From positions 558,001 through 622,000 of the forward strand of contig JAUPSS010000012.1 in NCBI GenBank assembly GCA_040285825.1: a stretch of DNA of 64,000 nucleotides. The letters are read 5' to 3'. The notes beneath the pieces were generated by a model. That model was not told the DNA's origin. It did not search any database and was given only the letters and a program-made list of their open reading frames with translations. Of this stretch, positions 3,001 to 64,000 are shown one piece after another (within the stretch, counting starts at the first letter, position 1; the number at the start of each line of letters is the position of its first letter). Both the position numbers and the translations under genes were made by a program. The stretch is from Eukaryota sp. TZLM1-RC. Its lineage: Eukaryota; Protista; Metamonada: BaSk clade.

Positions 3001-3355
3001 ACGATGTTCCAACGACCTGCCTATTTTCGAGCCATGGCTCTGTAGGATTAGGTCCGAACAGAAGCTTGCCATAGCTTCCAAAGACCCCTCTTTCAACAAC
3101 TGTGTTCATAACAATCATCTTGATTTATATATGACTCACGACAACAAGATAGTGATTCCCAAATCACTCATTAAGGACACCCTTAACTTGTTGCATGGAC
3201 TTCTGCAAGGAGGTCATCCAAGCAAAGCTGAAAGCCTGAACAAGCTCAGGAACAGCGACTATTGGTGGCCAAACATGCTCACCGACATGAATAAGCACGT
3301 CCAAGAATGCCCCTCCTGTCAGAAAACAAAGCCAGTTCCCAAACTGCATGTTCCC
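2..3355 (+). CDS. Gag-Pol polyprotein, part 1 (Gag zinc knuckle, aspartic protease, RT, RNase H, integrase HHCC)
   Basis: CNFCKQMGHPTERC (CX2CX4HX4C), IIDSGAT, LDLPKAFWQ, FGLKN, YIDD, CDASD, TDH, ADMLSR, H..GGHP..WWP..CPSC. The frame is open back to base 2, so the start is upstream. No gag/pol frameshift. Confidence 0.93.
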
Positions 3356-4521
3356 CAACCGGTTCATTGTGGGCTGACAGACCTTTTGCTCGCGTCAACG
3401 CCGACGTCATTGGTCCTCTTCCAGAAGATCAAGAAGGCTACAAATACATCCTCGTATTTATTGACAGCTTCTCTAGGTTCACGATCATCGTGCCTTTAAA
3501 AGAGATAAATGCCAATCTTACTGCAGATGCATTAATTTGGAAAGTCTGTGCCATCTTTGGTATTCCATTTCAAATCCACAGCGATAATGGACCCGAATTT
3601 TCCAAGGCTGTCTTTGACGAATTAAGCAAATTTTTGGGCATAGAGGTGTCAAAGTCAATACCTAGGTTTTCTCCGTCCAACGGCTTGGTAGAGCGCCGAC
3701 ACAGAGACATCCTGCAAAACCTACGGAAATTGCTCGTAGACTTCAATGCCTACGATGTGTGGTCCGAATACTTGCCTTATGTGCAATTATTGATCAACTC
3801 TTCCAAGAGCTCTATAACCAACCACACCCCATACCAAGTGATCTTTGGCTCAGATGTGTCCCCCAGATCAGACCCTGGCAAAATTCTTGAAATCATTGAA
3901 AGCTCGACGTCTGAGTCATCTTTTATTCAAGAAATTCAATCTAAATTTCGAAGATTGAAAGAGAAACAGGAAAAGGCAGCACACCATCAAGCTTCCAAAG
4001 CTTCCAAGCTAACTAGATCGTCAACTCCAAACCCTTTTGAAGTTGGTCAATTGGTATTGAGAGCATCCGGCTCTTCCGCTAAGCTTCATGGAGACTATTT
4101 AGGACCCTTCCTAATTACTGAAATCGTATCCAATTCGTCTGTGAATATTAAGAACCTCTGCACAGGTACGATTGTACAAGCTAGCGTCAAACATTTAACA
4201 CCCTGGCACTCCAGCTTGCCCACCAACGATGAGTTCCACTCCTGGGTCGCTGCAGGTGATGTCGAAGAACACATCATTGAAAAAGTGCTCAGTCAGGATG
4301 GTGACTTTTGCCAAGTGCAATGGCCTGGAAAAGAGATCACCACTGAACATGTGTCTACAATCCATAATACTGCCGCGTATAAAGACTTTATCAAGACTTC
4401 AAAAGCACGTCGCCGTACTAAATCCGCTCCTCCCAAGAAGCGTCATATTTCCATTAGTTCACCTCCTGTGACTAGAGCTTCCAGGGCTCGTCGCTCGAAA
4501 GAGAGGAAAAGGCAGTGTTAG
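3356..4521 (+). CDS. Pol part 2: integrase DDE core, GPY/F module, chromodomain-like region and basic tail; joined to part 1 by a 1-nt frameshift in a C run near 3355
   Basis: ADVIGPLP, IDSFSRF, SDNGPEF, NGLVERRHR, KL..YLGPF, EHIIEKVL..QVQWPG; one extra C in GTTCCCCAACC would fuse the two frames. Confidence 0.9.
4497..4515 (+). promoter_or_regulatory. Polypurine tract of the Gypsy element
   Basis: GAAAGAGAGGAAAAGGCAG immediately 5' of TGTTAG. Confidence 0.8.
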
Positions 4522-9693: not shown

Positions 9694-9848
9694 ACTTGGG
9701 TCTGTATTAAAAATAATTTTCGGAATAATGGTTGTAATAGATGTTTAGTATCAAATACTTCCTTTGTGGATCTGATTATTGTGTTTGCTCTCCTAATTCC
9801 GTGAAAAATATATTTTATTTTTTTTATTTTTTTTATTTATTTATCTCG

Positions 9849-12239
9849 CTAAATAACATTACTCTTTTGAGACTGACGAACCTCCAAAAAGGTCATTTGA
9901 CTTTCCTCCTCCCTGAGCCTCCTCATAATTTCCCTTTTCGCCATCTCAATATTGCCAATCTCCGTACTTTCAATTGCCAAATGTAACCCTCGCTGGCCCA
10001 ATTTTTCTTTTCCAGGAGGAACATGCGTTCCTCTAACCACAATCTGAACATTACAATAAGTACATAGAGATTCCACCACATCTTTGTTTGTGATCATTTT
10101 TCGCACTCGTTGTGGATAACTATTTATATCAAAATCTTCAGTGTAATAACCAGTTTTACCTGCAGCAACATCTGCCATTGCTGATAGTTTCGAGGCTTCA
10201 GATGCTGCTTGTCTAACTCTAGCAATTCTATCTTTTACCGATAACGTTTCATCCACGTCATCAATCTTGACTTCTGTTGACTTCTTTGGTTTTGAACCTA
10301 TTTGGGCAATCACCTTCTCTTTATCTATTGTTTCGACCTCTTCGTCACTTTCCTCAACCTCAATACCAGCTTGTAAACGCTGGAATTTCCGCATTTTCTC
10401 CTGCTCGCTTGCTTCCTTCTCATCAAATTTAAAACCTTGACCACCAAAACCTCCAAATTTTCTTCCTTTTTCTTGCTTTTCCTTAACCTTTTTCAAAAAA
10501 TTCTGGGCCATTTCAATTAACAACGACGGGATTTCTTCCCCTGTCTCCCTCAACGCTCGTACCAAATCTGGAGCAAACCTTGCTTCATCAGGCTGCAGAA
10601 ATGTCACTGCCTTTCCTTTCCTTCCCGCCCTACCTGTTCTCCCCACTCTATGTACATAGTCCTCTAAGTGGTTGGGAGCATCATAATTAACCACCAGATT
10701 GAGGTCTTTGACGTCCAAACCTCTCGCAGCAATGGAGGTAGCTATAAGGACGGAGAAAACACCATTTTTAAAATCTATAATAGTAGAATCTCTGTCATTT
10801 TGATCCATTGTGCCGTGCAGTACTCCACTAGAAAACCCTGCAGACACTAATTCTTTGAATAAAAGTCCAGAACTATCTTGACGCTCGACGAAAATCAACG
10901 ACTTTCCTGTCGATTCTCTCAAAATTTCGACTAGTTTGTCAAATTTTTCGACACGTGGCACAATATAAACAACTTGCTGAATTTCGCCACACACTCTACT
11001 TCTACCTCCTATGATAACTCTTATAGGTTTATTCAAAGTACTTTTAGCCAAAGCTTCCATTGGTCTAGGAAAAGTTGCCGAAAACATGACCAGTTGCCGG
11101 TCAGGTCTTGTACATTCAAGAATCTTTTTGATCTGGGGTTCAAAACCTAAATCAAACATGCGATCTGCTTCATCAATTACAACAATAGAAACCCGAAATA
11201 AATTAGTAACAGTACCATTATTGACCGTCAACATATCGATCAATCGTCCTGGAGTTGCAATAATAATGTCACACCCCCGACGTAGATCGGCGATTTGCTC
11301 TGAGACATGAGACCCGCCATATAAGCAAACCGAACGCAAGTCCAACACAGAGCCAAATCTTTTTGCTTCACTAAACGTTTGCATTGCCAATTCCCTCGTT
11401 GGAGCTAGTATTAATCCTTTTGGTCCATCACCACGACGTAAAGGTGGCTGCATGAGAAGATGGCGGAGGAGGGGGAGGAGGAAAGCGAGTGTCTTACCAC
11501 TTCCTGTCTTGGCGATACCAACCATATCGTAACCTGAACTGATGATTGGAATTGATTGGGATTGGATTGGTGTAGGATGCTTGAAATCCAAAAGAGACAG
11601 AAGGTCCAGTAAACGTTGAGGTAGACCGGATTGATACCATGAAATGATTGGGCAAGGTGCCACCTCATCACCACGTGATTTGATTGATGATTGGGGTCCA
11701 GTTATGCGAATGTTATCCATTTGAACACGTAGTTCTTCTACTTGACTGGGAGAGAGTGATGATAGTTCACGTGATTGTATGTAAAAGTTCTTTTTGATTG
11801 GATAATAATCAATCAAATCATGATTGGGGGCCATCAAGACTTTCGCAGAGAGCTTCCTCAATGGTTGTTTTATTTCTTCTCTATGCTGTTGCTGATCAGA
11901 GGTACTCGTACCTGCTTCTTCAACAGATTCAGCAATATGAGAGCTGGGGGTTAGAGAGAAATCACTGGTCATAAGTTGTGAGGTTGATAATGCCATACGC
12001 TCATTATTGGCATCACTAGGCAGGTCCATGGATGACATGAATGCCTGGAAAGGGTCCACAGAGGAAGTGGGGGAAGTGGAAGGAACACGAGCAGGTTCAG
12101 GTTGTTTGTCCTTGTGGCGACGTTCCCTCCATGACTGAAGCTTGCTTTTTCCAGGGTTTGGTTCAGAAGAATCACGACGTCGAGTTTTTGAGGGAGGGGA
12201 AGTTTTATGGGATGCAGTTCGATATGAAGAACGTCTCAT
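9849..12239 (-). CDS. PRP5: DEAD-box pre-mRNA splicing helicase Prp5/DDX46
   Basis: PTPIQ, AKTGSGKT, PTRELA, TPGR, DEADRMFDLGFEPQ, RPDRQ, SAT, ARGLD, HRVGRTGRAG, GFGGQGFKFD and the C-terminal DINSYPQ..R KH-like domain typical of DDX46; intronless 796 aa. Confidence 0.92.
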   Translation of the reverse strand: MRRSSYRTASHKTSPPSKTRRRDSSEPNPGKSKLQSWRERRHKDKQPEPARVPSTSPTSSVDPFQAFMSSMDLPSDANNERMALSTSQLMTSDFSLTPSSHIAESVEEAGTSTSDQQQHREEIKQPLRKLSAKVLMAPNHDLIDYYPIKKNFYIQSRELSSLSPSQVEELRVQMDNIRITGPQSSIKSRGDEVAPCPIISWYQSGLPQRLLDLLSLLDFKHPTPIQSQSIPIISSGYDMVGIAKTGSGKTLAFLLPLLRHLLMQPPLRRGDGPKGLILAPTRELAMQTFSEAKRFGSVLDLRSVCLYGGSHVSEQIADLRRGCDIIIATPGRLIDMLTVNNGTVTNLFRVSIVVIDEADRMFDLGFEPQIKKILECTRPDRQLVMFSATFPRPMEALAKSTLNKPIRVIIGGRSRVCGEIQQVVYIVPRVEKFDKLVEILRESTGKSLIFVERQDSSGLLFKELVSAGFSSGVLHGTMDQNDRDSTIIDFKNGVFSVLIATSIAARGLDVKDLNLVVNYDAPNHLEDYVHRVGRTGRAGRKGKAVTFLQPDEARFAPDLVRALRETGEEIPSLLIEMAQNFLKKVKEKQEKGRKFGGFGGQGFKFDEKEASEQEKMRKFQRLQAGIEVEESDEEVETIDKEKVIAQIGSKPKKSTEVKIDDVDETLSVKDRIARVRQAASEASKLSAMADVAAGKTGYYTEDFDINSYPQRVRKMITNKDVVESLCTYCNVQIVVRGTHVPPGKEKLGQRGLHLAIESTEIGNIEMAKREIMRRLREEESQMTFLEVRQSQKSNVI

Positions 12240-15200: not shown

Positions 15201-15842
15201 ATATTTATTGGCAAAAATAGCTATATTGGACAGATCGTTCAACAGTGAAAAAACCACGAAAAATAATAAATTTCGTTTTTCATGATTGTATAAGTCATTT
15301 ATTTAAACTATTTTCATTACCTTCACTCAACCATTATTTTTCTATTTGTTGTTTACACCGTCTTCAATTTTACCTTCGCATTCAATTAAACCACAAATAT
15401 TCATTTTCACCGCAATCATGAAATCATCTTCCCCATCAATTACGTCAGCTGTCATTGTTTGATTGACACATCAATTGCCACTATTCGGGACAGCTTTTCT
15501 GCATACAGTAGCAGTGGTCTTTGCTTGGGTATCTATTCTCTCAGCAAGATTTCCTCCTTCACCACACGTTCAGTCTTACTTAACTGACTGTAGAGATTCG
15601 AACTCATAAATACGAATGAATTTTTTCGCAAGTATTTTTGAGAGGCTCATGAAACCTATAAGTAATGTGATAACATTAAATGTATAACATGATTTAAGGA
15701 AAATAATCAAAATTTATAATAGAAGGAACTTGCAGCACTAAGGAATCGATTGAAAGAAATGTGTAGATTGAGTTGTGTTTCCCTTCCAGCACTAAATTTC
15801 ATCCATCTCCACAAAAAGGGTCCTTTTACCTATTAAGGCACA

Positions 15843-17636
15843 ATGGCTTTTCCTCAGATTCCTGGGTACTTGATTACCAAACAGATAGGCATGGGATCGT
15901 TTGGACGTGTCTTTGCAGCATTTTCCCAATCCACCTCCAGAGTCTACTGTATCAAGGAAGCTTCTCTTCCTGGTGATCAAAAGGATCGATGGGATAGGGA
16001 AGTCTTGCCAATGTCCTTGAATTTACCATACATTTGCAGTGTTAAACATACCTTTCACCTCAACAATCACTACTACATTGTTATGGATCTGTATCCTCAA
16101 AACTTGACACAGCTGATTTATAATCAATCACAACGAAGAGTTTTAGTTAAAGGTACACCTTTACACCCAAATTTAGCGTGGAAAATATTTGGACAGCTTG
16201 TTGAAGCTGTTCACTCCCTTAACCAGGAAAACTTGTGCCATCGGGATATCAAACCCGAGAACATTTTCCTCGATGACCAACTCAATGCAGTCCTTGGCGA
16301 CTTTGGCCACTCTCGTACCTTTGCGTCTGTCAACATGTTCACGACGGAAGCCTCTCCAGCATATCATGCTCCTGAAACTTTTCTGCATCCACATTACGGT
16401 ATTGAGGTGGACTACTTTGCCTTAGGAGTCGTGTTTTATGAAATGTTGGTGGGAGAGTTGCCTTATAATCCTAGTCATCATGATCGGAACATTTCAGAGT
16501 TGGCATTGAGGAAAGTTTCTGATGGTGAAGCAAGGAAAGTCATTCAACAATTAATGGTCCCTGATCCAATTGTCAGAGCTAGTTTTTTCAAGTTGATTTA
16601 TCTCAAAGTCCGAGAAAACGTAAAGAGGACCTCTGATTGGGAACCAAGCATTTCTTCTAATATGGGTGCTACGGGTTGTGCTTTTTCACCACAAAGAACA
16701 ACTTCTGTGGTAAATTTTTTATTGATTTCAGATTCCTCTGATAGTGAAGAACTCATAACTTCTTCATCACCACTTCTTCCTCCAACAATGTCATTGCCAA
16801 ACGGCCATCCTCTTGGTTTGGTAGAAGAATCTTCTTCTGATGATGACGTTATACTTGTTCCAAGGATTGAGTCAAAACCCATCAAAATTTTGAAGTTTAC
16901 CTTGTACTTTGTGTTCCAGCGACCAGTTTCGAAGCAGATCATCTCCAATGCGTTAGAAACACTTGCAGGTAAAGATGATGTTTGTTTCGACGTTAATGAT
17001 CTCTCCAATGGTTATCTTTTCTCCACTGACTGCCGATGTGGAGACCCAGGCACTGTTGAGAGACTTGAGGGTTTGGCTAATGATTCATTGATCAAACTCC
17101 CTCCTACTCTTATTAACTGTCAAGTCTTTCTTCACAAGACTGATCTGATTGTTTTGCTAGCTTACCACTCTTTTAGTGAAGTGAAGCAAGTCTTGTCATT
17201 TGATTTAGCACACAGTTCTCTGATCTTAAAAGACACTTACTCAATGAAAGCAAATGGTACCATTGTCTACGAAGTTTCAGTGTTGTCGTGCAAGGAAACT
17301 CATCTTGTAGCTAATCATTTGACTATGAAGAGGTTTCCTTTTGCTGTAACATATTCAGTTGGTTCCCGATTTGATTATGTTTTCAAAATTGGGTTTGCCC
17401 CTTCAGCGGATCTTTTACAGGCTCGGAAAGCGATAAATGAAGAGTTCAAACTTAAGGATTTAAACATTATCTTATTAGTTTACAATTCTGAGTTATTATT
17501 ATTCACAAGTTTTCCATACTGTCCCATAAAGGTTGGTAATACTTTTGTTATCCAGAGTCCAAAGAAAATGAAAAAGAAAAAGAAAAAATCTGATCACATA
17601 GTATGCTCTGTTTCTGAGTACTTGCCTCGTTGTTAG
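15843..17636 (+). CDS. Ser/Thr protein kinase with an unrecognised C-terminal region
   Basis: GMGSFG, CIK, HRDIKPEN, DFG, APE, DYFALG; 597 aa. Confidence 0.92.
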   Translation: MAFPQIPGYLITKQIGMGSFGRVFAAFSQSTSRVYCIKEASLPGDQKDRWDREVLPMSLNLPYICSVKHTFHLNNHYYIVMDLYPQNLTQLIYNQSQRRVLVKGTPLHPNLAWKIFGQLVEAVHSLNQENLCHRDIKPENIFLDDQLNAVLGDFGHSRTFASVNMFTTEASPAYHAPETFLHPHYGIEVDYFALGVVFYEMLVGELPYNPSHHDRNISELALRKVSDGEARKVIQQLMVPDPIVRASFFKLIYLKVRENVKRTSDWEPSISSNMGATGCAFSPQRTTSVVNFLLISDSSDSEELITSSSPLLPPTMSLPNGHPLGLVEESSSDDDVILVPRIESKPIKILKFTLYFVFQRPVSKQIISNALETLAGKDDVCFDVNDLSNGYLFSTDCRCGDPGTVERLEGLANDSLIKLPPTLINCQVFLHKTDLIVLLAYHSFSEVKQVLSFDLAHSSLILKDTYSMKANGTIVYEVSVLSCKETHLVANHLTMKRFPFAVTYSVGSRFDYVFKIGFAPSADLLQARKAINEEFKLKDLNIILLVYNSELLLFTSFPYCPIKVGNTFVIQSPKKMKKKKKKSDHIVCSVSEYLPRC

Positions 17637-18850: not shown

Positions 18851-19533
18851 TGAAATACCTGAAATATTACATTTGATGTTCAGTTGTTGTTCTAGATTTT
18901 AAGATTTTGCAAAATTTCGAGTTTAGTTCAATTTCACAAGTGACCACTTACATAAAAGAAGGGTCAAGAGGATTTGAGAGAGGTATTAAGAATCAGTTAT
19001 ATTCTTAAGTCTTTAGATAATAGGTGAAAAGAACAACTCTATTTTTCACTGATTGTATTTGACAAATCAATCACGGAGCTAAACCCTACCTCTTCAGTTC
19101 AGTCTGTGAAGCTACTAATTCATTGTATTTGTATGATAAGTTAAATTCACCAATGCCATCAAGATCACCAAAATTCATTAGATAATATCTTGATTTACAA
19201 CTCTTTAGGCCTAGTTTCCAAATAGAATAAGCTGATATTGCTGCAAAAACAAAAAGGAAGTGTAACCCTGGAGAGCACAAATGAGTCTTAAGTTCAAATC
19301 AATTGAAAAAAGTTTGAAAATTCCACAAGATAAAAGAATTTACGTAGAGAGTAATATTTATAATAACAACTCAAGAAATTTCTCAAGAAAGAACACTGAA
19401 GAATTATTGTAAACTTCACTAGTAATGTCAAAAAACTATAAACAAAAATAATGACCAAATAATAATAAAATAATCAACATTAAAAACAAAAGACACAATC
19501 GAAAAAAATCTCAAAAACTAATTAAAAAAAGAG

Positions 19534-20733
19534 CTACTCAACTTCCACTTCTGCACCTACATCTACTTCTGCATCTAAAGCTAATTCAAAATCTTCAAAT
19601 TCCTTTTTAAATGTATTCATTTGAACAGAATTTCGTAAAATTAAGGAATTCAAAACATCAAAATTAACATTGACCGTGTAGTTATTCAATGCAAAAGATT
19701 GTATTATGGCAGGCATTATTAAAAACAACTCTATAACGATTGGAATTGTTAATGTTATTAATACTAGAAAATTAACATAATAATAGACTAAAAAAGCAGC
19801 AATTGATCCTATGTTTCCAAATAAAACAATGGCAATGAATTTCAGTAAAATTTTTGATTGTCGCTGTGATTGTCGATGATTGGCTGGTTCCCGGTCAAGA
19901 ACATCGACGGCGCGGGAAACCTCTACCACTCTTGAAAACAAGGAATTATCAATAATAATTAAAATAACCAGAAAAGAATAAACTAAAAAAACACAAAACA
20001 CAAACAAACTAATTTCTCCATCAATACTGAATAACACAACTCTGAAATAATTAAAAACAAGAATGACCGCTATGAACAGCCACAAGGACCAGTGCAACTG
20101 GGCTATGTGGACAAAAGAAGACCTGCTGGCATGACGTAGGTATTTATTGAAAGGAAAAAGTTCAGTGTGTATGTGGTCTTCGTAAATTTGGTCGACCTTG
20201 TAGAAAAATTGTTTTTTAATAAGAAGAAAAGAAATAGCATATTGAAGCTTTTTCAGTTTTCTTCTACGTTTGAAACAAAAGACACGTAAAAAAGTGGGTG
20301 TACATGTGTGCTCATTCAATAATGATTGGTGATCTGATTGTAACTGCACAAGTGATGAAGTGGCATCTATTGACTTCCAGAGACTAAAGGTGAGAGAAGC
20401 AGACCACATAAGAAAAAGAATGAAAACAAGATAGACAACGACAATGCCAAATAGAATGAAATGGACCAGATCAAATAGTTCCTTGTACATAGAGACAAAT
20501 GGAAGGAATGCAAGGGCTTCGTAGTACTCTATGAGGAAGAGGAGCAATGAGAGGAGGCCAATGACCATGAGTTCTTGGAAGACGATTTGCAGTACGGCTT
20601 TGACATTGGCGTAGTTACGGACGAGATAGTTGACAAAGATGAGAAGTTGTTGGAGAATAAAGGAGAGGAAGATACCAGTAAGTAGAAGAACAGTTACGGA
20701 TCCCACATCAAGATCAGCAGTGTCTAGAGGCAT
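19534..20733 (-). CDS. MLO-like multi-pass membrane protein
   Basis: QELMVIGLLSLLL, LVHFILF, FPFNKYL..F..LHWSLWLF match MLO blocks ELMLLGFISLLL, LHIFIF and FDFHKY..F..IS..LW; about 7 hydrophobic segments; first ATG at 20733. Confidence 0.72.
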   Translation of the reverse strand: MPLDTADLDVGSVTVLLLTGIFLSFILQQLLIFVNYLVRNYANVKAVLQIVFQELMVIGLLSLLLFLIEYYEALAFLPFVSMYKELFDLVHFILFGIVVVYLVFILFLMWSASLTFSLWKSIDATSSLVQLQSDHQSLLNEHTCTPTFLRVFCFKRRRKLKKLQYAISFLLIKKQFFYKVDQIYEDHIHTELFPFNKYLRHASRSSFVHIAQLHWSLWLFIAVILVFNYFRVVLFSIDGEISLFVFCVFLVYSFLVILIIIDNSLFSRVVEVSRAVDVLDREPANHRQSQRQSKILLKFIAIVLFGNIGSIAAFLVYYYVNFLVLITLTIPIVIELFLIMPAIIQSFALNNYTVNVNFDVLNSLILRNSVQMNTFKKEFEDFELALDAEVDVGAEVEVE

Positions 20734-36695: not shown

Positions 36696-37397
36696 ATGTT
36701 CTTTGTCAACATTGTCGGACTCACTGGTGGCATTGCCACGGGAAAAACTACGGTCTCTTCGCTGTTTAGCCAACTTAATGCAGCAATCGTTGATTCTGAC
36801 GAAATTGCAAAATCTATTGTCAAACCTGGCAAACCTGCCTTCAAACGTATTGTAGCCACTTTTGGTGAGCAAGTCCTAGACGAAGAAGGTAACCTGGACA
36901 GACAAAAATTAGGCTCCATCATCTTCAAAGACCCTTCTGCAAGAAGGAAACTCAACTCCATAACTCATCCCAAAGTCATTTTTGAAATGATTAAGCAAAC
37001 TATTCTGCACTGGGTGTGTCTCCGTCTCGTTGTGGTCTGGAATACGCCTCTCCTCATTGAGACAAACCTTCATAAGCTCTGCAAGTCTGTGGTGGTTGTG
37101 TTTGCTGAGCCTGAAGTGCAACTAGACCGGCTCATAAAGAGGGACGGGCTGGAGAAAGATGCTGCATTGGATAGGATATACGCACAGATGAGCATACATG
37201 ATAAGTGTAGATTAGCTGATCACGTTGTAAATAATAATGGTGATTTGAATAGTACATGTAGCCAAATCAGCAGCGTATATAAGAAAATTAGCCCTTCTCA
37301 TCCTTTATTGGTTCGTTTTACTAGAATTGGTTTGATGGGCTTTTTGTTGTGGCTAGTGTATTTTACATCACTGGTTGTTGTAAGAATGATTGTTTAA
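36696..37397 (+). CDS. DCAKD: Dephospho-CoA kinase (CoaE/DCAKD type) with C-terminal membrane anchor
   Basis: VGLTGGIATGKTT, LDRQKLGSIIF, LNSITHP, PLLIE, QLDRLIKRD, RIYAQM, NNGD. Confidence 0.95.
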   Translation: MFFVNIVGLTGGIATGKTTVSSLFSQLNAAIVDSDEIAKSIVKPGKPAFKRIVATFGEQVLDEEGNLDRQKLGSIIFKDPSARRKLNSITHPKVIFEMIKQTILHWVCLRLVVVWNTPLLIETNLHKLCKSVVVVFAEPEVQLDRLIKRDGLEKDAALDRIYAQMSIHDKCRLADHVVNNNGDLNSTCSQISSVYKKISPSHPLLVRFTRIGLMGFLLWLVYFTSLVVVRMIV

Positions 37398-39731: not shown

Positions 39732-42700
39732 ATGAATTCTATATTATTCGCTTCTTCAATGAATCAATCTGCAGTTGAATTTACTCTGAATCTTTTCAAC
39801 AGCGGTGAAGAGAGCAATGTCCATGATCTAAAACGTTCATTGGCCAAGTCTGCTAGTCATAAAAGATCTGGAAAGTGTTCGCTGCTCTTCACAATTCGCC
39901 GGGTCAGTGTCCTTTTTTGGCCAAATTATCCACTTCGTCGTCTTACCTCATCATTGGTGTGGACGAGGATGGAATTGGTGTGGACGAGGATGAAACTTCT
40001 TTTTATACATCTTCTGCATTTAAAACTGATTTACGTTCTGTTGCTCTTCACTTCCAAGAAGGCAAAGCTTTACCTTCTCACATCAACTTAGAGAATTCTT
40101 TACCAGATGATAAAATTTTTTCCGAGTTACTTTCTTCGATCTTTAAATGTATTCCTCGTGTTGAGTTTCACGCATTGTTTACTGTCAGTTTGGATGTGGA
40201 CAAATCTGAGCAGAACAAAAAACCACCAACGAGAACTGTCTTTCTACTTGAGATTTGCTGTGGTTTGGCTCTCTTATGTTATAGCAATCAGATTTGGGTC
40301 AGAAATGGATCAATTTGTTCAAAATTTGAGGAATTGACTGTTTCACAGCAACTTTCTGTTGTTCAGAAATTTTCTTCATGTGATGTTTTCTCCTTTTTGT
40401 CGCGTGTAGTTGTTATTTTCAATTCTTCTTCTTGCTTTGCTCAGGACTCTTATTCTCTTCCAAGACATTCTTTGTTATTCAATTTTATTTCGTTGCCATG
40501 GAAATTTGTTCTTGACGTTTCACCAACTGCCATGTCCGATTTTCATTCTAGGGGCTTTTACAAACATGTGCCTGATCTCCTTTCCAGTGAAACTTCTTTC
40601 ACTAATTCGCTTCATGAGCTCAAATTGTCAGATCAGGATATTGTTTCGTTTGGTTTAAATATACCATTTATTTCATGTAATAGTAGCCTAGATCTGGCAA
40701 TTCTTTCATGGTGCTCGTTCTACCGTAGCAATATTTGCTATCGGTTTGGTTTTCAAGGCGAATCAGGTTTATCATCATTTACTCAGTTACCTTTTACCTG
40801 TCATTCTGAAGATGATCTTGCCAAACATTTCAAATGTTTTCTTTCAGGTGATAAGCCCCATTTTTCACTCTTAGGAACTGATTGCGTGATTCCTTCTCAT
40901 TATGGAATTGTTCGCTTACAATCGAACTTGAAAGCTGTCTTCAAGGAAGATAAATGGAAAATTGGAGTTTTTGAAGTTGAGAAAACAGAACACTGCAATG
41001 GTTGTCGCACTGCCGTGCTGACTTCGTTGGCTAAAATTGGTGATCAAGAACGTTTTTCATCATTTGTGATTAATTCAGATACTAGAGAAGATCAGCGAAA
41101 AGCATTGTCTGTGATTTTATCTTCTTCAATTGATTACATAGTCATTTTCATTGATGGTATTTCCAAAAAACATTTTGTAAAAGATATTTTAGAGTTTGAA
41201 TCACGAGAATGGCTATCAAAACCGTCCAAGCTATTATTTGTAGTCACAAAGTTTACCTCATCTCCAAAATATGATTGCAACAATCGCAGTGCTATGCATC
41301 ATCAACCATTTTTCCCAAAGGGAGAAAGGGCGGAACTTTCGTTCTGGAACTACCATTATAATCCTTATAACATTCCAGGTTTCTTTACCAATTTTGAAAG
41401 CAACCTCAAGAATCTTTGTTGTAGATTTAAACTACCTGAACTTGAAAACGCAACTTCTTATGAACATTCCTTATTACTCTATGTTGGGGTCCTTGTATTC
41501 CGAAGGTCAACCGATAAAATGAAAGAGACCGTTGGCTATCTTATTAAACAGTTTTTTACAAGACCTGTAGGAGATCATGAATTATATCGCTTTACGCGTT
41601 GATTCTGATACTGACTTCCTAATAGATATCGTTGAGTGCGTCGTATTACCATTATGCTTATACTGTCGTACAGCAGAAAGTCTTTCTTTAAAAGATTGTA
41701 CGGATTTTCTCCACACGTTGAGTCAGATACAATGTACATCGGGTTGTGTCAGGTTTGGAAAGCGTTTGTTGTCTACTCGTCTTTTATGTGTTTTATTTAA
41801 ACGCTTTCTTAAGTCTAAACAATCAAGGCAAATTCTTAATAACTGGATTTCCGAATTTGGTATATCCCTTGACAATGTGAAAATAGCTATCGATAACAGT
41901 TCTAGGACTAACCCGAGTTCTGTATTTACTGAACTTGGTGATTTTTATCGCTACAGAGATTGCAGTCAAGATGTGCAGAACAAAGATCAAAATATACAAA
42001 ATGTAGTTGATTGTTATTCCTATGCTTTGCAGTATGATCCTTCCAATACTTTTGCAAAACATGGCCTTTTATCTGCTTTTTATTTTGCTTGTGAGTGGAA
42101 TATTAGCAAAAGGTTTCTTTTGGATGAACTTGACTTCAAACTTGATTTTATTCTTTTTGTTCATCTGTTAGGTAATGCTGCTTCGCTTCGTGGCAAATCT
42201 GTGATTTTAAAAGAAGAGCTTGCCAGTCTATCCTCCACAAAAGAAACCAGTAATACTCTTGTCCTCTGTTTCATTTGTGATCTTATTAAAAATGGCCGTG
42301 TTCTGCCTGATGCCCAAGAAGCAAAAATCTTGTTCAGGTCTTCAACTGCTTATTCTTCCTCCTGCAAGGTTTTAACTGCGCTATTTTCGGTCTTTCGTTT
42401 CCTTTTTCAATGGTCACATCATCCTGAAGCAGATGAATCGAATTTTGTTGAGGACTGTTATCTCTTTGATCAAAATGTTTCTCTGCTCAATGATTTTTCT
42501 TCAAAGAAGATGTTGAACAATTTGCTGAGTTAGATTTTGAAACAAAAAGATACCTGAATACATTTATCATTCATCTGTCAGCATTGAGGTATCTAATTTG
42601 TTTTACATTGGACAAATTGGATTTCAAGAAGTTTTGGATATACCATAGATTTTGTGATCTTAAAGACAGTCCCAATGTGCTACCCAAAAGTAGTTTGTTT

Positions 42701-42850
42701 GTCCTGGAAAGGACCAATGATAACAATTTTGTCTTAATAAATAAGCAAGTTGATGTTGATTGTATTGATTCATTGAATTTTAATGATCATTATTTTTGTT
42801 TCACTTCAACAATAGCTTCTGAATGGGGGGTAGCATTGTTAAAGAACTAA
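39732..42850 (+). pseudogene. SAMD9-like protein, subfamily A (AlbA_2, SIR2-like, STAND-like NTPase, TPR); frameshifted near 39870, 41590 and 42530-42580
   Basis: GEESNVHDLK, FAALHNS, YLIIGVDED, IWVRNGS; LPWKFVLDVSP..SRG; FLSGDKP; HCNGCRTA; IFID; FTELGDFYR..YSYALQYDPSN. Confidence 0.65.
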
Positions 42851-42959
42851 CTCTAGACTTGAACAGATTTCACAGAAAAGGAAACAGATATTATTGTTTG
42901 TCATCAAAGAAAGTTTAAAATAAATAAATCTATAAGTATAAATGATAATAAATGGTATA

Positions 42960-43351
42960 ATTAAAAAATATTTATTGAATTTGCACACTTAATTAAATTA
43001 ATTCATAACTAATGGGACGAATATCATTGAACCAAGATTTTTCAACAAAATCTTGATCTGCTTTCTGTGTAGCTAAAGCTTCTCTTATTCGATTGAAAAA
43101 CCGAGGTAATCTATTAATAATGGCAAATTGAATCCGTGAACGCCATAAGCAAATACCAAATCTTCTCATTGTTTTTTCTTTAACCATTTTTTGGAAGTCA
43201 TTCAAAAAAGTTTCTGCTTCATGTGATAATCTTCCGTTTATCGAAAACGGAAAAGCAATAAAAACTAGCTGTGTATTTCTATCGACATTAGCCTCCTCAG
43301 TATCTTTATCATATTTTCTATGTCTTTCTTTTGCTTTAAAATCAAGAACAT
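42960..43351 (-). mobile_element. 3' fragment of a CRE-like non-LTR element
   Basis: KAKERHRKY..FIAFPFSINGRL; the same subfamily recurs at 44.3-44.7, 51.5-52.2 and 60.6-61.3 kb. Confidence 0.75.
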
Positions 43352-43369
43352 TTAACAAAACATGTAACA

Positions 43370-44701
43370 TGTAACAAGGGTCTTAATGTTTCATCACTAA
43401 CTTCATCATCTAGATCATCTGAACCTTAAGTTTTGGCATTGGTAAATTTCAAGTTTAAATTGTGTTCAATCAACCAACTTAAGGTTAATGGTAAATTATA
43501 TCATTTACATGTAAAAACATGATAATTAACTAAAACCCAAACCAGCGAAAATCATCCTTCATGAGAAATTTTAGTTAGTTTAATAATAAATAAATAATAA
43601 ATAAGAATAAAGATTTCCACTCAAAACCATGTTCTAGGTTCAAATACCACCACCTCCAACAAAATAACAGTAGAAATCCCAATGTTTGTGGGTTCAACTC
43701 CCAGTTGTCGGAAATCATATGGGGTAATCATAAGGGAATAGAGGGTGCAAATGTGATGAAAATCAGCAAGCTAAGGTCAATGAAATGTATAATGAAGTTT
43801 GCTGGACAATACAGGTGTGGAATGGAAACTGAATGTCCCAGGTATGAATTTGAAGTAAAAGTAGAATACAGTGTGGAGAACGATGGTGGTGAATATCAAG
43901 TATCTTTCTTGTTGAAATAAGCACGAGCACATCAAGAGAATGATCAAGAAAAAGAGTGATTATACCAGAGACACATTATATGGATGATACGAAAGTAGAG
44001 GGAATGAACTGAAAGAACTACACCAAGAATGAAGTGAGTTGGGTTTCAAAGAATATCTTGAAAGGATATCTGTAATGTTTACAGTTTCTGAAGGGTGTAA
44101 AAATATCCGATCGATCGGCTTGGACAGAAGATTCAAAACCTAATATCCGAGGGTCGTCTAGGTTATTTAGATTGTGCTACGTCAATAACAGGATTCTTGA
44201 ACTTTATAGACAGAATAATCAAGGCTGACTATGTAAGTCTAAAAATAATATGAAGTTATTGCTTCTTTGTTATTTAATATTTATTGAATTTTCACACTTA
44301 ATTAAATTAACTCATAACTAATGGGACGACTATCATTGAACCAAGATTTCCTCTACAAAATCTTGATCTGCTTGCTGTCTAGCTAAAGCTTCTCTTATTC
44401 GATTGAAAAACCGAGGTAATCTATTAATAATGGCAAATTGAATCCGTGAACGCCATAAGACAATATCAAAACTTTTCATTGTTTTTACTTGAACATTTTT
44501 TTGGAAATCATTCAAAAAAGTTTCTGCTTCATTTGATAATCTTCCATTAATCGAAAATGGGAAAGCAATAAAAACCAGCTGTGTATTTCTATCAACATTA
44601 GCCTCCTCAGTATCTGTATCATATTTTCTATGTCTTTCTTTTGCTTTAAAATCAAGAACACTTACAGGACCAAGTTTTCCTCTGTGAACAACAGTATCAT
44701 T
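43370..44701. repeat. Segmental duplication, near-identical to 59723-61054
   Basis: Same sequence from TGTAACAAGGG to ACAGTATCATT in both places. Confidence 0.95.
43740..44230 (+). pseudogene. Possible decayed protein kinase fragment (duplicated at ~60090-60580)
   Basis: E..VMK.SKL.SMKCIMKFAGQY..VEY..GG and a KISD..GL-like piece in broken frames. Confidence 0.3.
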
Positions 44702-45245
44702 GAAATCAATGTTGGAATAGACTTGAAAATGCAGAAAACAATTCTATTTATCCAGAAAGTGGAGTTCATTGTTTTACCAGACCTATTCAGTAACACTTTT
44801 TTGAAATTTTCAAAAAAGTGCAACCCTGAAGGTCCAATATTGCCAAAAAGAGAAATTGCAAACGGCACAAACTGATATTTCACATGTTCCACTCTACCTA
44901 ACTGTGCCAAAGGTTCTTCATATTTTTTTATCTTCTTTTTTTCGGCGTTAAAATTACAGAAATGTCATCCATATATGCTACAATATCTATTTCTGGGAAT
45001 TTTTCTTTCAATTCGCACATTAATGGATGAATTGCCAGACAAAAGAAAAAAGGACCAAGTGGATCACCTTGTTTAACACCTGAAGACGAAAACAGGTCAA
45101 AGTTTTCATAGACCAATGTGGATGATTTTCCATAAAATGAATAGAAAAAAGGCTCAACTTCAGGAAAATGCTTTTTGCAGCAAAGGTAAAATGGAAGAAC
45201 GAGATACAGAATTGAAAGCATTCTTAAAATCTAAATTGAAGATGT
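44275..45245 (-). mobile_element. Patchwork of CRE-like fragments: two RLE 3' ends and an RT core piece
   Basis: RLE motifs VPFAISLFGNIG and FIAFPFSING; RT SGVKQGDPLGP..YMDD and LDFKNAF. Confidence 0.85.
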
Positions 45246-48200
45246 TCTATAAAGTTAACCGTAATCTTTAAACGTTAATTCATTTAAAATAATTATTTAG
45301 AAAGCAACATTACCCGTAATTACACATATACGATTTACTCATTCAAGTGCTGATGCTCTATCAAAATGGCTCATAATTTGAAATTTGTGTTTCATTCTCT
45401 CCTCAGTTCATTTCAAAAACACAGGGAATGTTGGTTCAATAAATTGAGTGCTATTAAGTCTGGGTACTGAAATACAAGAAATATTTTTGATTTTGACTCA
45501 AAAATGAATTATGTTTTTATAACTACAGAAAAAAACCCAACTGAGCAAACTCCAGTCAATCTTTATAATCCTGTAAAATGGAAACTACAAAAAAATATTA
45601 CTTAGTATTAATTAATAAGAAGTAATTCCACTAAACATTCATTAAGATGAATGCCAACTCAACAAATCCAATTTATTCCTTGGATTGTGATCTCGTGTTT
45701 TATATCCATGTGTCAATTGCTGAATTTCCTCAAAAGAGTTTCGCAACAAATATTTGTAACAATAAGAAGAAAAATTGTTTCAACCTCCTTACATAATTGA
45801 ATTGTTTTATTGAACTACAACACTTAATAAAAATTCAAATTGACAAAAAAACTAATTCTCATTTGGCACATTACAGAAGACAACGTCAACAGCAGCTTTA
45901 GAGTCCGCAACCCTATCGCATTATATATCACCCCTGTCATCAACTAAAAATATTCAATGACAGTTCATCTTTCACCAGAGGCTCTTTAATACACCAGATT
46001 CAGGCAGTTCATGCCATATTGAACACAGTGCCTCTAACAGCATCATGTTATGAAGAACAATCAGTTATCAATTCCGAACAATTCAGAGCATGATGCAAAG
46101 TGAGCTGTGGTGAATTTGAATACACTTTTTAGTGATAATTGATCAATAGGAATGTTCAAACATATTTATGCAAAAAAATAAAATAGTCTATAACATATAA
46201 CAACAAATATAAGATAAGGTAACCGATGAAAACTCATTCGCAATGGTTCATGCATATGTTCTGAAACATTGTGGAAGTTGTGAAACAGCAGGGTTTTTCA
46301 AATATAAACAAAAACTAAGCTTTTTAAATAGACTCATCTACCTTAATAAACAATCACAGGGTTTTTGGTGAAATTTTAAGGTAGGGTTTATTTTTGGAGA
46401 AAATAATAATAGCATTTGAATCACAAAATACTGTGACGGGCAATTGGTCATTTGATAGAGTTCTCACATTCATGCTGCCTACACTGTCTTTGGTCAACGC
46501 AGCTGGCATGAACATGTAAGAATCCTGCTGTGCCTTACACAGCCTATATTTGGAATCTCTTAGTTCAAGATAACAGGATTGTTGATTTATAAATTGGTCA
46601 TCAATAAGAACAATGTTGAAATTCTTGGATCGGAATAACTCAGGCTTAAAATATAATTGGAGCATTGTAGTTAGTGTACAGTTTTTACTACTACTACTAG
46701 TGAAAACATCTTCCAAATTATTAAATACAGATTCACAATCAGTTTCACCGTAAAGAAACAGAGTAGCTGCCTCTAAAGATAGATTTCGGTGGTCTTTCTC
46801 CACAACAGTTGCCAATGTAAAACAATCTGAATTATCATCATCTTCATCATGTTGCAACAATAGTCGCGATTGAGGAATTTTGATATACTCAGCAACAGTA
46901 TCATTATCCCAAACCAAATTTCGATCGTCAAAAGATAACATCTTACTTATGAAGAAAAAAAGACCATATTCTACCAACTGCTAGTTGCTCATCATCAGAC
47001 AATGCTTCAAAACTGTGAGACAGCAAAAATTCTCCCATACTCGTAAACCATGAATCAAATTGAAGGACGGAATCTGGGGATTTTTCAACTAAAGAAATAA
47101 ATAACTCATGTGTGAGATACTCGCTGGTGGAAAAACGGTTAGCCAAATCATTTCTACCCGAAAAATAACAACAACAATATGTCAATAAAAATCCATGCGC
47201 TGCAAAAAGTAGACCCGGAATCCTCAGCCAATGCCTGTTGATAGGAAATCAACGAGAGATCCAAACAGTGTGCTCTCCTGGAATGCAAATTTTGAGCAAA
47301 ATAACGGAATGTATCCCCTAGAATAGTGAAGAACTGAGAAATTTGACGTTCTTTAACAAAACCTTCAGGCACATCGTAATCTCCAAATTTTTCAACAATT
47401 TTGCCACTGTTGTTAAAAAAATACAAATGGCTTCATCTATAAGTTTTTCAACTTCGAATCCCTCTTTTGCACAAATTTTCAAAAACGAACATTGAAGCTG
47501 ACTATATAATAATTCTGAAGGAAGATTTTCGCTAGTACATCGGATTAAAAAAATAGAGATCAAAAGCATCTTTTGGTTGAATTTTAATTTTACCTCTTCG
47601 ATTAAGAAATAACTTTCGAATAACCTTTATAAAAACAGAATGAAACCATGCTTCGCTTCCAGAATCCCAAAGAAGACGAAAAGCATTCATAATAGTTGAT
47701 TCGCCAGAGTTGGTTGAAGAAGAACAAATTATTTCAGCAACAGTTCTATTTATACAAAATAGACCTGTACCAGCTCCAACAGCAGGGAGAATAATTCTGT
47801 TAAAACAAGGCAACTTTTCAAAATTAGAATGAAATCTTTCAGAAGTGAATAAATCAAGGGGAAATTGTTCTGATTTCCCAGTCACCGAAAACAAGACAAT
47901 AAAATAGAAATAGTCCTTTATCTCGATCGTTCAGTTTCTTCCACATTGAATCGAGCAAACTCTTAACTGTAGTCTCAGCTAAGGAAAAATTCTTCTTAAA
48001 TAATGCAATTCCTATATATAAGAAATCTTTTTCAACATGTCGTCCTAGTTTTTTTGTTTAATTGATCACAACGTTTGTTCAAAGTAGAAATAAAATTGTC
48101 TCTATAAAGATTCATTTCATACGTGTATTTTTTTGTATCGAAACATCCTTTCTTTCAAGGCCGGTAACTTGTTTCCAATGTACACCAAATGAAAAAAACT

Positions 48201-61355: not shown

Positions 61356-61545
61356 TATTTATGCAAAAAATAAAATAGTCTATAACATATAACAACAAAT
61401 ATAAGATAAGGTAACCGATGAAAACTCATTCGCAATGGTTCATGCATATGTTCTGAAACATTGTGGAAGTTGTGAAACAGCAGGGTTTTTCAAATATAAA
61501 CAAAAACTAAGCTTTTTAAATAGACTCATCTACCTTAATAAACAA

Positions 61546-64000
61546 TCACAGGGTTTTTGGTGAAATTTTAAGGTAGGGTTTATTTTTGGAGAAAATAATA
61601 ATAGCATTTGAATCACAAAATACTGTGATGTTGTTGTCGAACTTAAATTGAATTAGTAGGTTTCATTGTATTTTTGACTGATGACGTGATACTCGTTTAT
61701 GAATCAGTTTTATTAATAAACTCAGATTTCTCTCTCTCCTTCGTGTGTTCATCTGCCTAACGGCATCAATAATTATTGGCCCTTCTTATTTCAGATGACT
61801 GTTCCCTCTGTTAACCTGACGTCTCTTTCTTCCATGAAAGTTGAAAGTGTTCTTCTGTTCCTATAGGAGTGAAAGATTTATTCTTCGGTGACTCCTAAGA
61901 AAGAGCTTGTTCCAGCAAGACTCTTGGTCGATTCTTTTCTGTTAGAGTCCCTATCTCTCCAGAAATCCGACGGCTGATCCAGTGACGATGTTCTTCTCAG
62001 ACATCTACAATCTGTCGTATCGTTCGCCATGTACGAAGATTTTTAGTCTGGCTATGTCAGAACTGATGCTTTATGTCCGTATTGGTGACGTCCGAGAACG
62101 TATGTCCTGTTACCTGCGACGTTTTTTTCCAGGTAAAGAGTAGGGCTTCCGGACTGAAGTTGCCAGACATAGCTTTTTCTGAACCGATTTGCCAGAGGAC
62201 TTCTTTTCGTAGGTATCCAACGTTCTCATACCATCGATGCACCGGAGAATTTAACAAACCCCATATCTCCCCTCTATTGAGCCAGTACTGTATTTGTCCT
62301 CAGAAAATGAGAAAAAGTAGTGTTGTTGTCGAACTTAAATTGAATTAGTAGGTTTCATTGTATTTTTGACTGATGACGTGATACTCGTTTATGAATCAGT
62401 TTTATTAATAAACTCAGATTTCTCTCTCTCCTTCGTGTGTTCATCTGCCTAACGGCATCAGTGACGGGCAATTGGTCATTTGATAGAGTTCTCACATTCA
62501 TGCTGCCTACACTGTCTTTGGTCAACGCAGCTGGCATGAACATGTAAGAATCCTGCTGTGCCTTACACAGCCTATATTTGGAATCTCTTAGTTCAAGATA
62601 ACAGGATTGTTGATTTATAAATTGGTCATCAATAAGAACAATGTTGAAATTCTTGGATCGGAATAACTCAGGCTTAAAATATAATTGGAGCATTGTAGTT
62701 AGTGTACAGTTTTTACTACTACTACTAGTGAAAACATCTTCCAAATTATTAAATACAGATTCACAATCAGTTTCACCGTAAAGAAACAGAGTAGCTGCCT
62801 CTAAAGATAGATTTCGGTGGTCTTTCTCCACAACAGTTGCCAATGTAAAACAATCTGAATTATCATCATCTTCATCATGTTGCAACAATAGTCGCGATTG
62901 AGGAATTTTTGATATACTCAGCAACAGTATCATTATCCCAAACCAAATTTCGATCGTCAAAAAGATAACATCTTACTTATGAAGAAAAAAAGACCATATT
63001 CTACCAACTGCTAGTTGCTCATCATCAGACAATGCTTCAAAAACTGTGAGACAGCAAAAATTCTCCCATACTCGTAAAACCATGAATCAAATTGAAGGAC
63101 GGAATCTGGGGATTTTTCAACTAAAGAAATAAATAACTCATGTGTGAGATACTCGCTGGTGGAAAAACGGTTAGCCAAATCATTTCTACCCGAAAAATAA
63201 CAACAACAATATGTCAATAAAAATCCATGCGCTGCAAAAAGTAGACCCGGAATCCTCAGCCAATGCCTGTTGATAGGAAATCAACGAGAGATCCAAACAG
63301 TGTGCTCTCCTGGAATGCAAATTTTGAGCAAAATAACGGAATGTATCCCCTAGAATAGTGAAGAACTGAGAAATTTGACGTTCTTTAACAAAACCTTCAG
63401 GCACATCGTAATCTCCAAATTTTTCAACAATTTTGCCACTGTTGTTAAAAAAATACAAATGGCTTCATCTATAAGTTTTTCAACTTCGAATCCCTCTTTT
63501 GCACAAATTTTCAAAAACGAACATTGAAGCTGACTATATAATAATTCTGAAGGAAGATTTTCGCTAGTACATCGGATTAAAAAATAGAGATCAAAAGCAT
63601 CTTTTGGTTGAATTTTTAATTTTACCTCTTCGATTAAGAAATAACTTTCGAATAACCTTTATAAAAACAGAATGAAACCATGCTTCGCTTCCAGAATCCC
63701 AAAGAAGACGAAAAGCATTCATAATAGTTGATTCGCCAGAGTTGGTTGAAGAAGAACAAATTATTTCAGCAACAGTTCTATTTATACAAAATAGACCTGT
63801 ACCAGCTCCAACAGCAGGGAGAATAATTCTGTTAAAACAAGGCAACTTTTCAAAATTAGAATGAAATCTTTCAGAAGTGAATAAATCAAGGGAAATTGTT
63901 CTGATTTCCCAGTCACCGAAAACAAGACAATAAAATAGAAATAGTCCTTTATCTCGATCGTTCAGTTTCTTCCACATTGAATCGAGCAAACTCTTAACTG
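61546..64000 (-). pseudogene. SAMD9-like subfamily B copy 3 (3' part), interrupted by a TRIM; continues beyond the window
   Basis: Near-identical to 46354-47970 apart from the insertion at 61629-62460. Confidence 0.65.
61629..62460 (+). mobile_element. TRIM (non-autonomous miniature LTR retrotransposon), 832 bp
   Basis: Identical 140-bp LTRs TGTT...ATCA (61629-61768, 62321-62460), GTGA TSD, PPT AGAAAATGAGAAAAAGTAG at 62302-62320, no long ORF; empty sites at ~46433 and ~54817. Confidence 0.95.

Follow-up and report, generated by a model that had tools for sequence, protein, structure and literature searches.

What protein family do four related and partly frame-broken loci represent in a 64,000-nucleotide stretch (the window) of the genome of the protist Skoliomonas litria TZLM1-RC, and how close does that family come to the antiviral receptors of animals and bacteria? 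Its source is contig JAUPSS010000012.1 (664 kb) in the assembly GCA_040285825.1, deposited as "Eukaryota sp. TZLM1-RC", the type strain of this free-living protist, a haloalkaliphilic, anaerobic metamonad (PMC11603281). An original prediction, made from the letters alone, had described these loci as SAM-less, SAMD9/Avs-like receptor-nucleases. The reading preferred here, with moderate confidence, is that the four loci belong to a lineage-specific family of STAND NTPases of ~1,100 residues, with a domain order like that of a SAM-less SAMD9 or of the bacterial Avs9.

The family and its intact paralog

Copy A, the sole member of subfamily A in the window, comprises ~1,040 codons on the forward strand (39732..42850), as delimited by the open reading frame (ORF) listing, a three-frame reading and homology to an intact paralog, P0004. 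The three members of subfamily B lie on the reverse strand: B1 (46354..49641), with ~1,100 codons after the removal of assembly errors, defined by its ORFs and by read-derived contigs; B2 (54738..59090), which lacks the first ~75 codons, its homology stopping at 59090; and B3 (61549..64000), with its C-terminal end at 61549-61569, which passes the end of the window and continues in the neighboring stretch L002. The placement of all four loci and their motif blocks in the original prediction was found to be correct, including the starts MNSILFASS (A, 39732) and MHRSNIL (B1, ending at 49641).

Compared directly, A and B show weak similarity, with a best tblastx E value of 0.002 in the TPR block and a Smith-Waterman z of 5.8 (300 shuffles). 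They are linked as one family because P0004 (paralog C) bridges both. P0004 is an uninterrupted ORF of 1,135 amino acids (aa), listed at NCBI as the hypothetical protein P9112_010355 and located at 2560-5967 of L001, a second family cluster on contig JAUPSS010000006.1 (1,280,360-1,300,935). It has all the motif blocks described earlier and aligns with A at z 20.8 and with B at z 14.4, while B and relic D of the second cluster reach z 28; none of 300 shuffles attained these scores (0/300). For these local alignments, the pieces of every frame-broken copy were linked by an X, and the motif blocks are colinear across the four-way alignment. The claim that A and B share ordered blocks was thus upheld, and at the level of sequence homology, A and B1-B3 are confirmed as colinear homologs of a divergent, multi-copy family in a unicellular eukaryote, with paralog identity of only 20-35%.

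Besides P0004, L001 contains the fragments C', D, E, and F, interspersed with Mutator-like element (MULE) transposase and reverse transcriptase (RT) genes. The fragments include a C-terminal piece with 63% identity (1525-1764), the B-like relic D (9824-11346), and the N-terminal relics E (15654-16005) and F (19359-19873). A further stretch, L003, is listed together with L001 as carrying the second family cluster.

Predicted domain architecture

The first of five domains is predicted to be a nuclease of the Schlafen/AlbA_2 type at the N-terminus. The proposed active-site motif, Ex4DxK, reads EESNVHDLK in copy A (39807..39833, forward strand) and EQDHLDLK in B1 (49561..49584, reverse strand). 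Its three residues, E25, D30, and K32 in P0004, are invariant in four paralogs (C, E, A, and B), whose N-terminal alignment has no more than five invariant columns in all. SLFN11 and 5,930 prokaryotic Schlafen nucleases carry Ex4(E/D)xK as their catalytic signature (PMC13056530), and the family motif matches this signature as motif-level evidence; a helix motif, AALHN[ST], and then a beta strand with an acidic end follow. The proposed AlbA_2-type N-terminus therefore stood as far as the invariant motif is concerned, whereas the suggested Pfam check of this domain for AlbA_2 (PF04326) gave no match at E values up to 10, and no AlbA_2 fold was recovered. The AlphaFold2 model of P0004 1-395, built on a 3-sequence alignment, has a predicted local distance difference test (pLDDT) of 31.7, which makes it unusable and a fold search with it meaningless. 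A tblastn search of the N-terminal domain against plasmids returned one chance match only.

In A, B1, and P0004, the nuclease motif starts ~25 residues after the start codon, so there is no room for an N-terminal SAM domain. This domain, the mark of animal SAMD9/9L proper, is absent from the family, as had been predicted. The second domain is a conserved middle region of ~200 residues (VLFNSEEF ... PF/PW..D..S) sited between the nuclease motif and the ATPase; it may be SIR2-like, but its domain pieces gave no profile match to SIR2 in Pfam at E values up to 10, and the low-scoring model of P0004 1-395 is of no use for its fold either.

The third domain would be a nucleotide-binding oligomerization module, and its Walker A motif has no lysine. 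The motif is EHCNGCRTA in copy A (40988-41014, forward strand) and SPCIGLTTA in B1 (48386-48412, reverse strand); in the general form C-x-G-[LC]-[HRT]-T, residues C456, G458, and T461 are invariant, and lysine is missing from all four paralogs, in agreement with the lysine-less P-loop described before. In SAMD9, 742-GGT-744 stands where GKT is expected (PMC13600222), and in SAMD9L, His741 replaces the Walker A lysine (bioRxiv 10.64898/2026.02.01.703102). A block of the form F[FL][SQ]G[GED][KR] is conserved ~50 residues upstream of the P-loop (FLSGDKP in copy A, 40838-40858, forward strand; FFQGGRV in B1, 48540-48560, reverse strand). SAMD9 has R685, G686, and K688 in a "lineage insert" located 57 residues upstream of its P-loop (PMC13600222). 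One structural alignment pairs residues 1-175 of the ATPase model with SAMD9 676-856, and the family block would overlie the lineage-insert residues if the start of that alignment is ungapped.

The ATPase model was produced with AlphaFold2 for P0004 396-730 from a five-row family alignment and has a mean pLDDT of 52.5, with a core of 54-83 and a beta-loop-alpha topology. It was compared with 48,161 PDB representatives without a prefilter. Among the matches listed, which include SAMD9, Avs5, NRC2, Apaf-1, CED-4, and ZAR1, the best are SAMD9 and Avs5; SAMD9 entries occupy the top four ranks in one structural search, and SAMD9, Avs5, and NRC2 fall within 1 Z unit in the PDB-wide comparison. A shape search of the ESM Atlas gave a SIR2_2 + nSTAND_NTPase5 cluster as its longest match. 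The model supports a STAND NTPase fold for this module, predicted to have helical domains after a P-loop alpha/beta core and to be closest to SAMD9/Avs5. The proposed likeness to SAMD9/Avs was thus retained for the modeled ATPase, but no sequence or profile match accompanied it.

The fourth domain would be a helical region with at least one TPR unit. One unit per protein fits the TPR consensus Y..AL..DP.N..A..G by eye in A, B, and C, namely, FTELGDFY ... YSYALQYDPSNTF in copy A (41925..42053, forward strand) and FTILGDTF ... YQQALAEDSGSTF in B1 (47205..47330, reverse strand). The predicted TPR is retained to this extent, but the units have no Pfam match. The fifth domain is a putative beta-rich C-terminal tail, possibly an OB fold, and residues 990-1135 of P0004 gave no Pfam match, OB included.

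By analogy with SAMD9 and Avs, the protein would rest in a closed, autoinhibited, nucleotide-bound state, and its C-terminal repeats may recognize a ligand derived from the invader. Rearrangement or oligomerization of the nucleotide-binding module would then release the N-terminal nuclease, which might cut tRNA or another nucleic acid and cause translation arrest in the infected cell. An immune or antiviral role of the family would follow from the same analogy.

The relatives of the family were also sought with language-model and sequence searches. The 467-aa ORF of B2 (57688-59091; B467) has nSTAND_NTPase5/nSTAND3 as its nearest language-model neighbors (0.86); for whole P0004, the nearest clusters are one of AlbA_2+TPR type (0.79) and an AlbA_2 cluster of 1,106 aa (0.76). 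When B467 was scanned with HMMER against all 1.84 billion representatives, its own copy and P0003 (34% identity) were the only sequences recovered. In three word-indexed protein database searches, in which a length filter would hide fragmented gene calls, the queries recovered only themselves, and scans of metagenome and viral contigs gave no relatives of the family. The large ORFs of the window had no Pfam match for AlbA_2, SIR2, P-loop, or TPR; sub-threshold rows on four window ORFs (ASXH, Pneumo_phosprot, Antimicrobial13, and Alp7A_like_C) were rejected as chance matches.

The B array, its frame breaks, and the genomic setting

The B copies share 98.8-99.7% DNA identity and belong to a segmental repeat with a period of ~8.4 kb, of which one unit, a B copy together with retroelement fragments, spans 44700..53087 (44700-47717 matches 53088-56097 at 99.6%). 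L002 is 100% identical to the final 906 bases of the window and extends the same array with two further B copies past the window end; together with the three in the window, the array therefore has at least five, and these, with the second cluster, agree with the multi-copy family of the original prediction. B2 contains an internal tandem duplication of 1,280 bp (54818-56097 = 56095-57374, 99.7%), and its truncation junction at 59090/59091 is also present in a read-derived contig. B3 has an insertion of 832 bp near its 3' end (61629-62460), flanked by a pair of 140-bp direct repeats with 100% identity (61629-61768 = 62321-62460); the insertion may be a small long terminal repeat (LTR)-like element or a duplication. 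The read contigs contain extra B junction variants that are not in the window, with loose ends at 46813 and 47742 that match 43740/60093 and 59192. Fragments of non-LTR retrotransposons lie between the family copies (42967-45221, 51545-53504, and 59723-61318), including an RVT_1 motif at 44928-45221 and a 219-aa ORF at 60659-61318.

The original prediction had stitched broken ORFs together to obtain the proteins. The blocks so obtained hold, but the breaks in B are mainly homopolymer errors of the assembly. Against contigs derived from short reads (two runs of the same sample), B1 has a surplus assembly base at 12 listed sites, 46955, 47204, 47415 (two bases), 47547, 47888, 48049, 48128, 48192, 48376, 48523, 48657, and 49242, all of them A/T homopolymers of at least 5 bases, and four more gaps were counted besides these. 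The 1-base indels between B copies, among the indels listed, are likewise all in A/T homopolymers. Of the read-listed sites, 48049 is an A7 run that divides a 467-aa from a 266-aa ORF in every assembled B copy. Once B1 is corrected at the 12 read-listed sites and at two more deduced from copy B2, it forms an unbroken ORF of 1,032 aa from MKAVYIIL to KISPKTL, and two further gaps in 49377-49700 would connect two short N-terminal pieces. From these read-based corrections, B1 is most likely an intact gene of ~1,100 codons, and the frame breaks in B are mostly assembly artefacts instead of pseudogenization. Introns were considered for these breaks and rejected because the reads reveal wrong homopolymer lengths where the frame breaks. 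Overall, the long-read assembly over-calls A/T homopolymers with ~16 one-base errors in 3.4 kb (46300-49700) relative to the short-read contigs, and this probably extends to all its repeated parts. Such errors break up gene calls in repeated families, while unique long ORFs such as that at 24397-33840 are intact.

In copy A, frame breaks occur near 39870-39875, 41599-41601, and 42497-42500; the third is in a T5 run and the second is in no homopolymer, the read-based check having covered B1. Copy A is also ~100 residues short relative to B and C.

The remainder of the window contains ordinary eukaryotic genes with few introns and a Ty3-type retroelement. A Ty3/gypsy-type pol (protease, RT, RNase H, and integrase) is present as two overlapping ORFs at 23-4521 on the forward strand. 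The housekeeping genes include a DEAD-box helicase with a KH domain (9849-12239, reverse strand), a protein kinase (15843-17636, forward strand), and a dephospho-CoA kinase (36696-37397, forward strand). The long ORF at 24397-33840 (forward strand) encodes 3,147 aa with RCC1 repeats and a PH domain at the C-terminus and has a tandem array of a 75-bp (25-aa) unit, with 33.8 copies at 30832-33368 and 96% matches.

Competing interpretations and known systems

Several results weigh against a SAMD9/Avs9-type architecture. Pfam searches with whole P0004 and six domain pieces returned nothing at E values up to 10, a PADLOC search of the family had no match, and PDB searches by phmmer (A575, B467, and P0004) and by hmmsearch (three family profiles) gave nothing relevant. 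The language-model scores stay below 0.9, the level above which a match counts as more than a lead; the acidic residue of Walker B is not conserved and is absent in P0004; and Ex4DxK has a chance expectation of ~0.4 per 1,100 residues. As for the immune role, no virus of S. litria TZLM1-RC is known. The lack of any profile match to AlbA_2, SIR2, or OB at any threshold, together with the unusable N-terminal model and the tie of SAMD9, Avs5, and NRC2, would also be expected if these were lineage-specific proteins sharing only the general STAND fold, with N-terminal and middle domains unrelated to AlbA_2/SIR2. This explanation is possible and is considered rather unlikely, since it has to accommodate the invariant N-terminal Ex4DxK, whole-protein language-model neighbors that are AlbA_2 proteins of similar length, and the SAMD9 entries heading one structural search.

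The genomic setting invites two other explanations. The position of the B copies inside an 8.4-kb repeat with RT fragments, the MULE and RT genes interspersed in the L001 cluster, and the many truncated copies could point to a selfish gene, or one associated with transposons, that was amplified along with retroelements and serves no host-defense function. Transposase, RT, and integrase domains are lacking from the protein, the gene itself is not bounded by terminal repeats, and the low paralog identity fits an old gene family and not a young element, all of which makes this origin improbable. Slightly less credence still is given to a decaying pseudogene array with no present function; the break of copy A outside homopolymers and its shorter length, the truncation of B2, the interruption of B3, and the fragmentary state of D, E, and F in L001 speak for decay, while P0004 is intact, and so is B1 once corrected by reads. 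The favored family of SAMD9/Avs9-like domain order is compatible with the same setting, as the birth-and-death of an immune cluster would leave tandem amplification, many truncated relics, and transposons scattered among them; a selfish gene would fit this pattern too.

SAMD9 relatives were described in animals and bacteria by Mekhedov et al. (PMC5445408). A survey of 2025 found structural relatives in metazoa, bacteria, and archaea, whereas even relaxed structural searches detected no such protein in plants, fungi, algae, or protozoa; from that distribution, it argued for convergence of SAMD9 and Avs9 (PMC12680541). A metamonad family of the SAMD9/Avs type would be new. With doubt and confidence about evenly matched, the present family is proposed as the first receptor-nuclease family of SAMD9/Avs9 architecture in a non-metazoan eukaryote, SAM-less like Avs9 and with an ATPase core nearest to animal SAMD9. 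In humans, SAMD9/9L are among the major antiviral and disease genes, and a protist family with a SAMD9-type ATPase, a lysine-less P-loop, and a Schlafen motif would fill the protozoan gap. Such a family could represent either a phylogenetic intermediate or a separate acquisition from bacteria; it would bear on whether animal SAMD9 and bacterial Avs9 reflect convergence or shared descent, which would become testable with phylogenetic trees of the ATPase and nuclease domains, and it would imply abortive-infection-style tRNA-nuclease immunity in free-living protists. Families of this kind can escape sequence searches, and long-read homopolymer errors can fragment their gene calls.

Among the known systems, the animal SAMD9/SAMD9L (PDB 9ZJR; PMC13600222; PMC5445408) differ from this metamonad family in having a SAM domain, a long N-terminal linker, and ~450 more residues. 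The SAMD9 R685 equivalent is S or Q in the family, the spacing between Walker A and Walker B is ~40 residues compared with 55 in SAMD9, the Walker B acidic pair is not conserved, and there is no detectable similarity at the sequence level. Avs5 (AVAST type 5 SIR2-STAND; PDB 9JAP and 9NC9) is without an AlbA_2 nuclease and has a SIR2 NADase as its effector, whereas the family is without a SIR2 profile match. The Schlafen nucleases (SLFN11 and prokaryotic Slfn; PMC13056530) share Ex4(E/D)xK, followed by the AALHN[ST] helix motif and the acidic-ended strand, while the family has no PF04326 match and has ~13 extra residues from the N[ST] motif to the strand. Bacterial Avs9, compared here by its published description (PMC12680541), differs from the eukaryotic family in the distance from DxK to the next acidic strand (26 residues, against 48 in the family). 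Like the family, Avs9 has no SAM domain, and its AlbA_2 nuclease at the N-terminus of a STAND-TPR body corresponds to the domain order predicted here; the two are of comparable size, a 1,106-aa AlbA_2 cluster being among the nearest language-model neighbors of P0004, and they have the E-x4-D spacing in common, at E14/D19 in Avs9 and E25/D30 in the family (PMC12680541).

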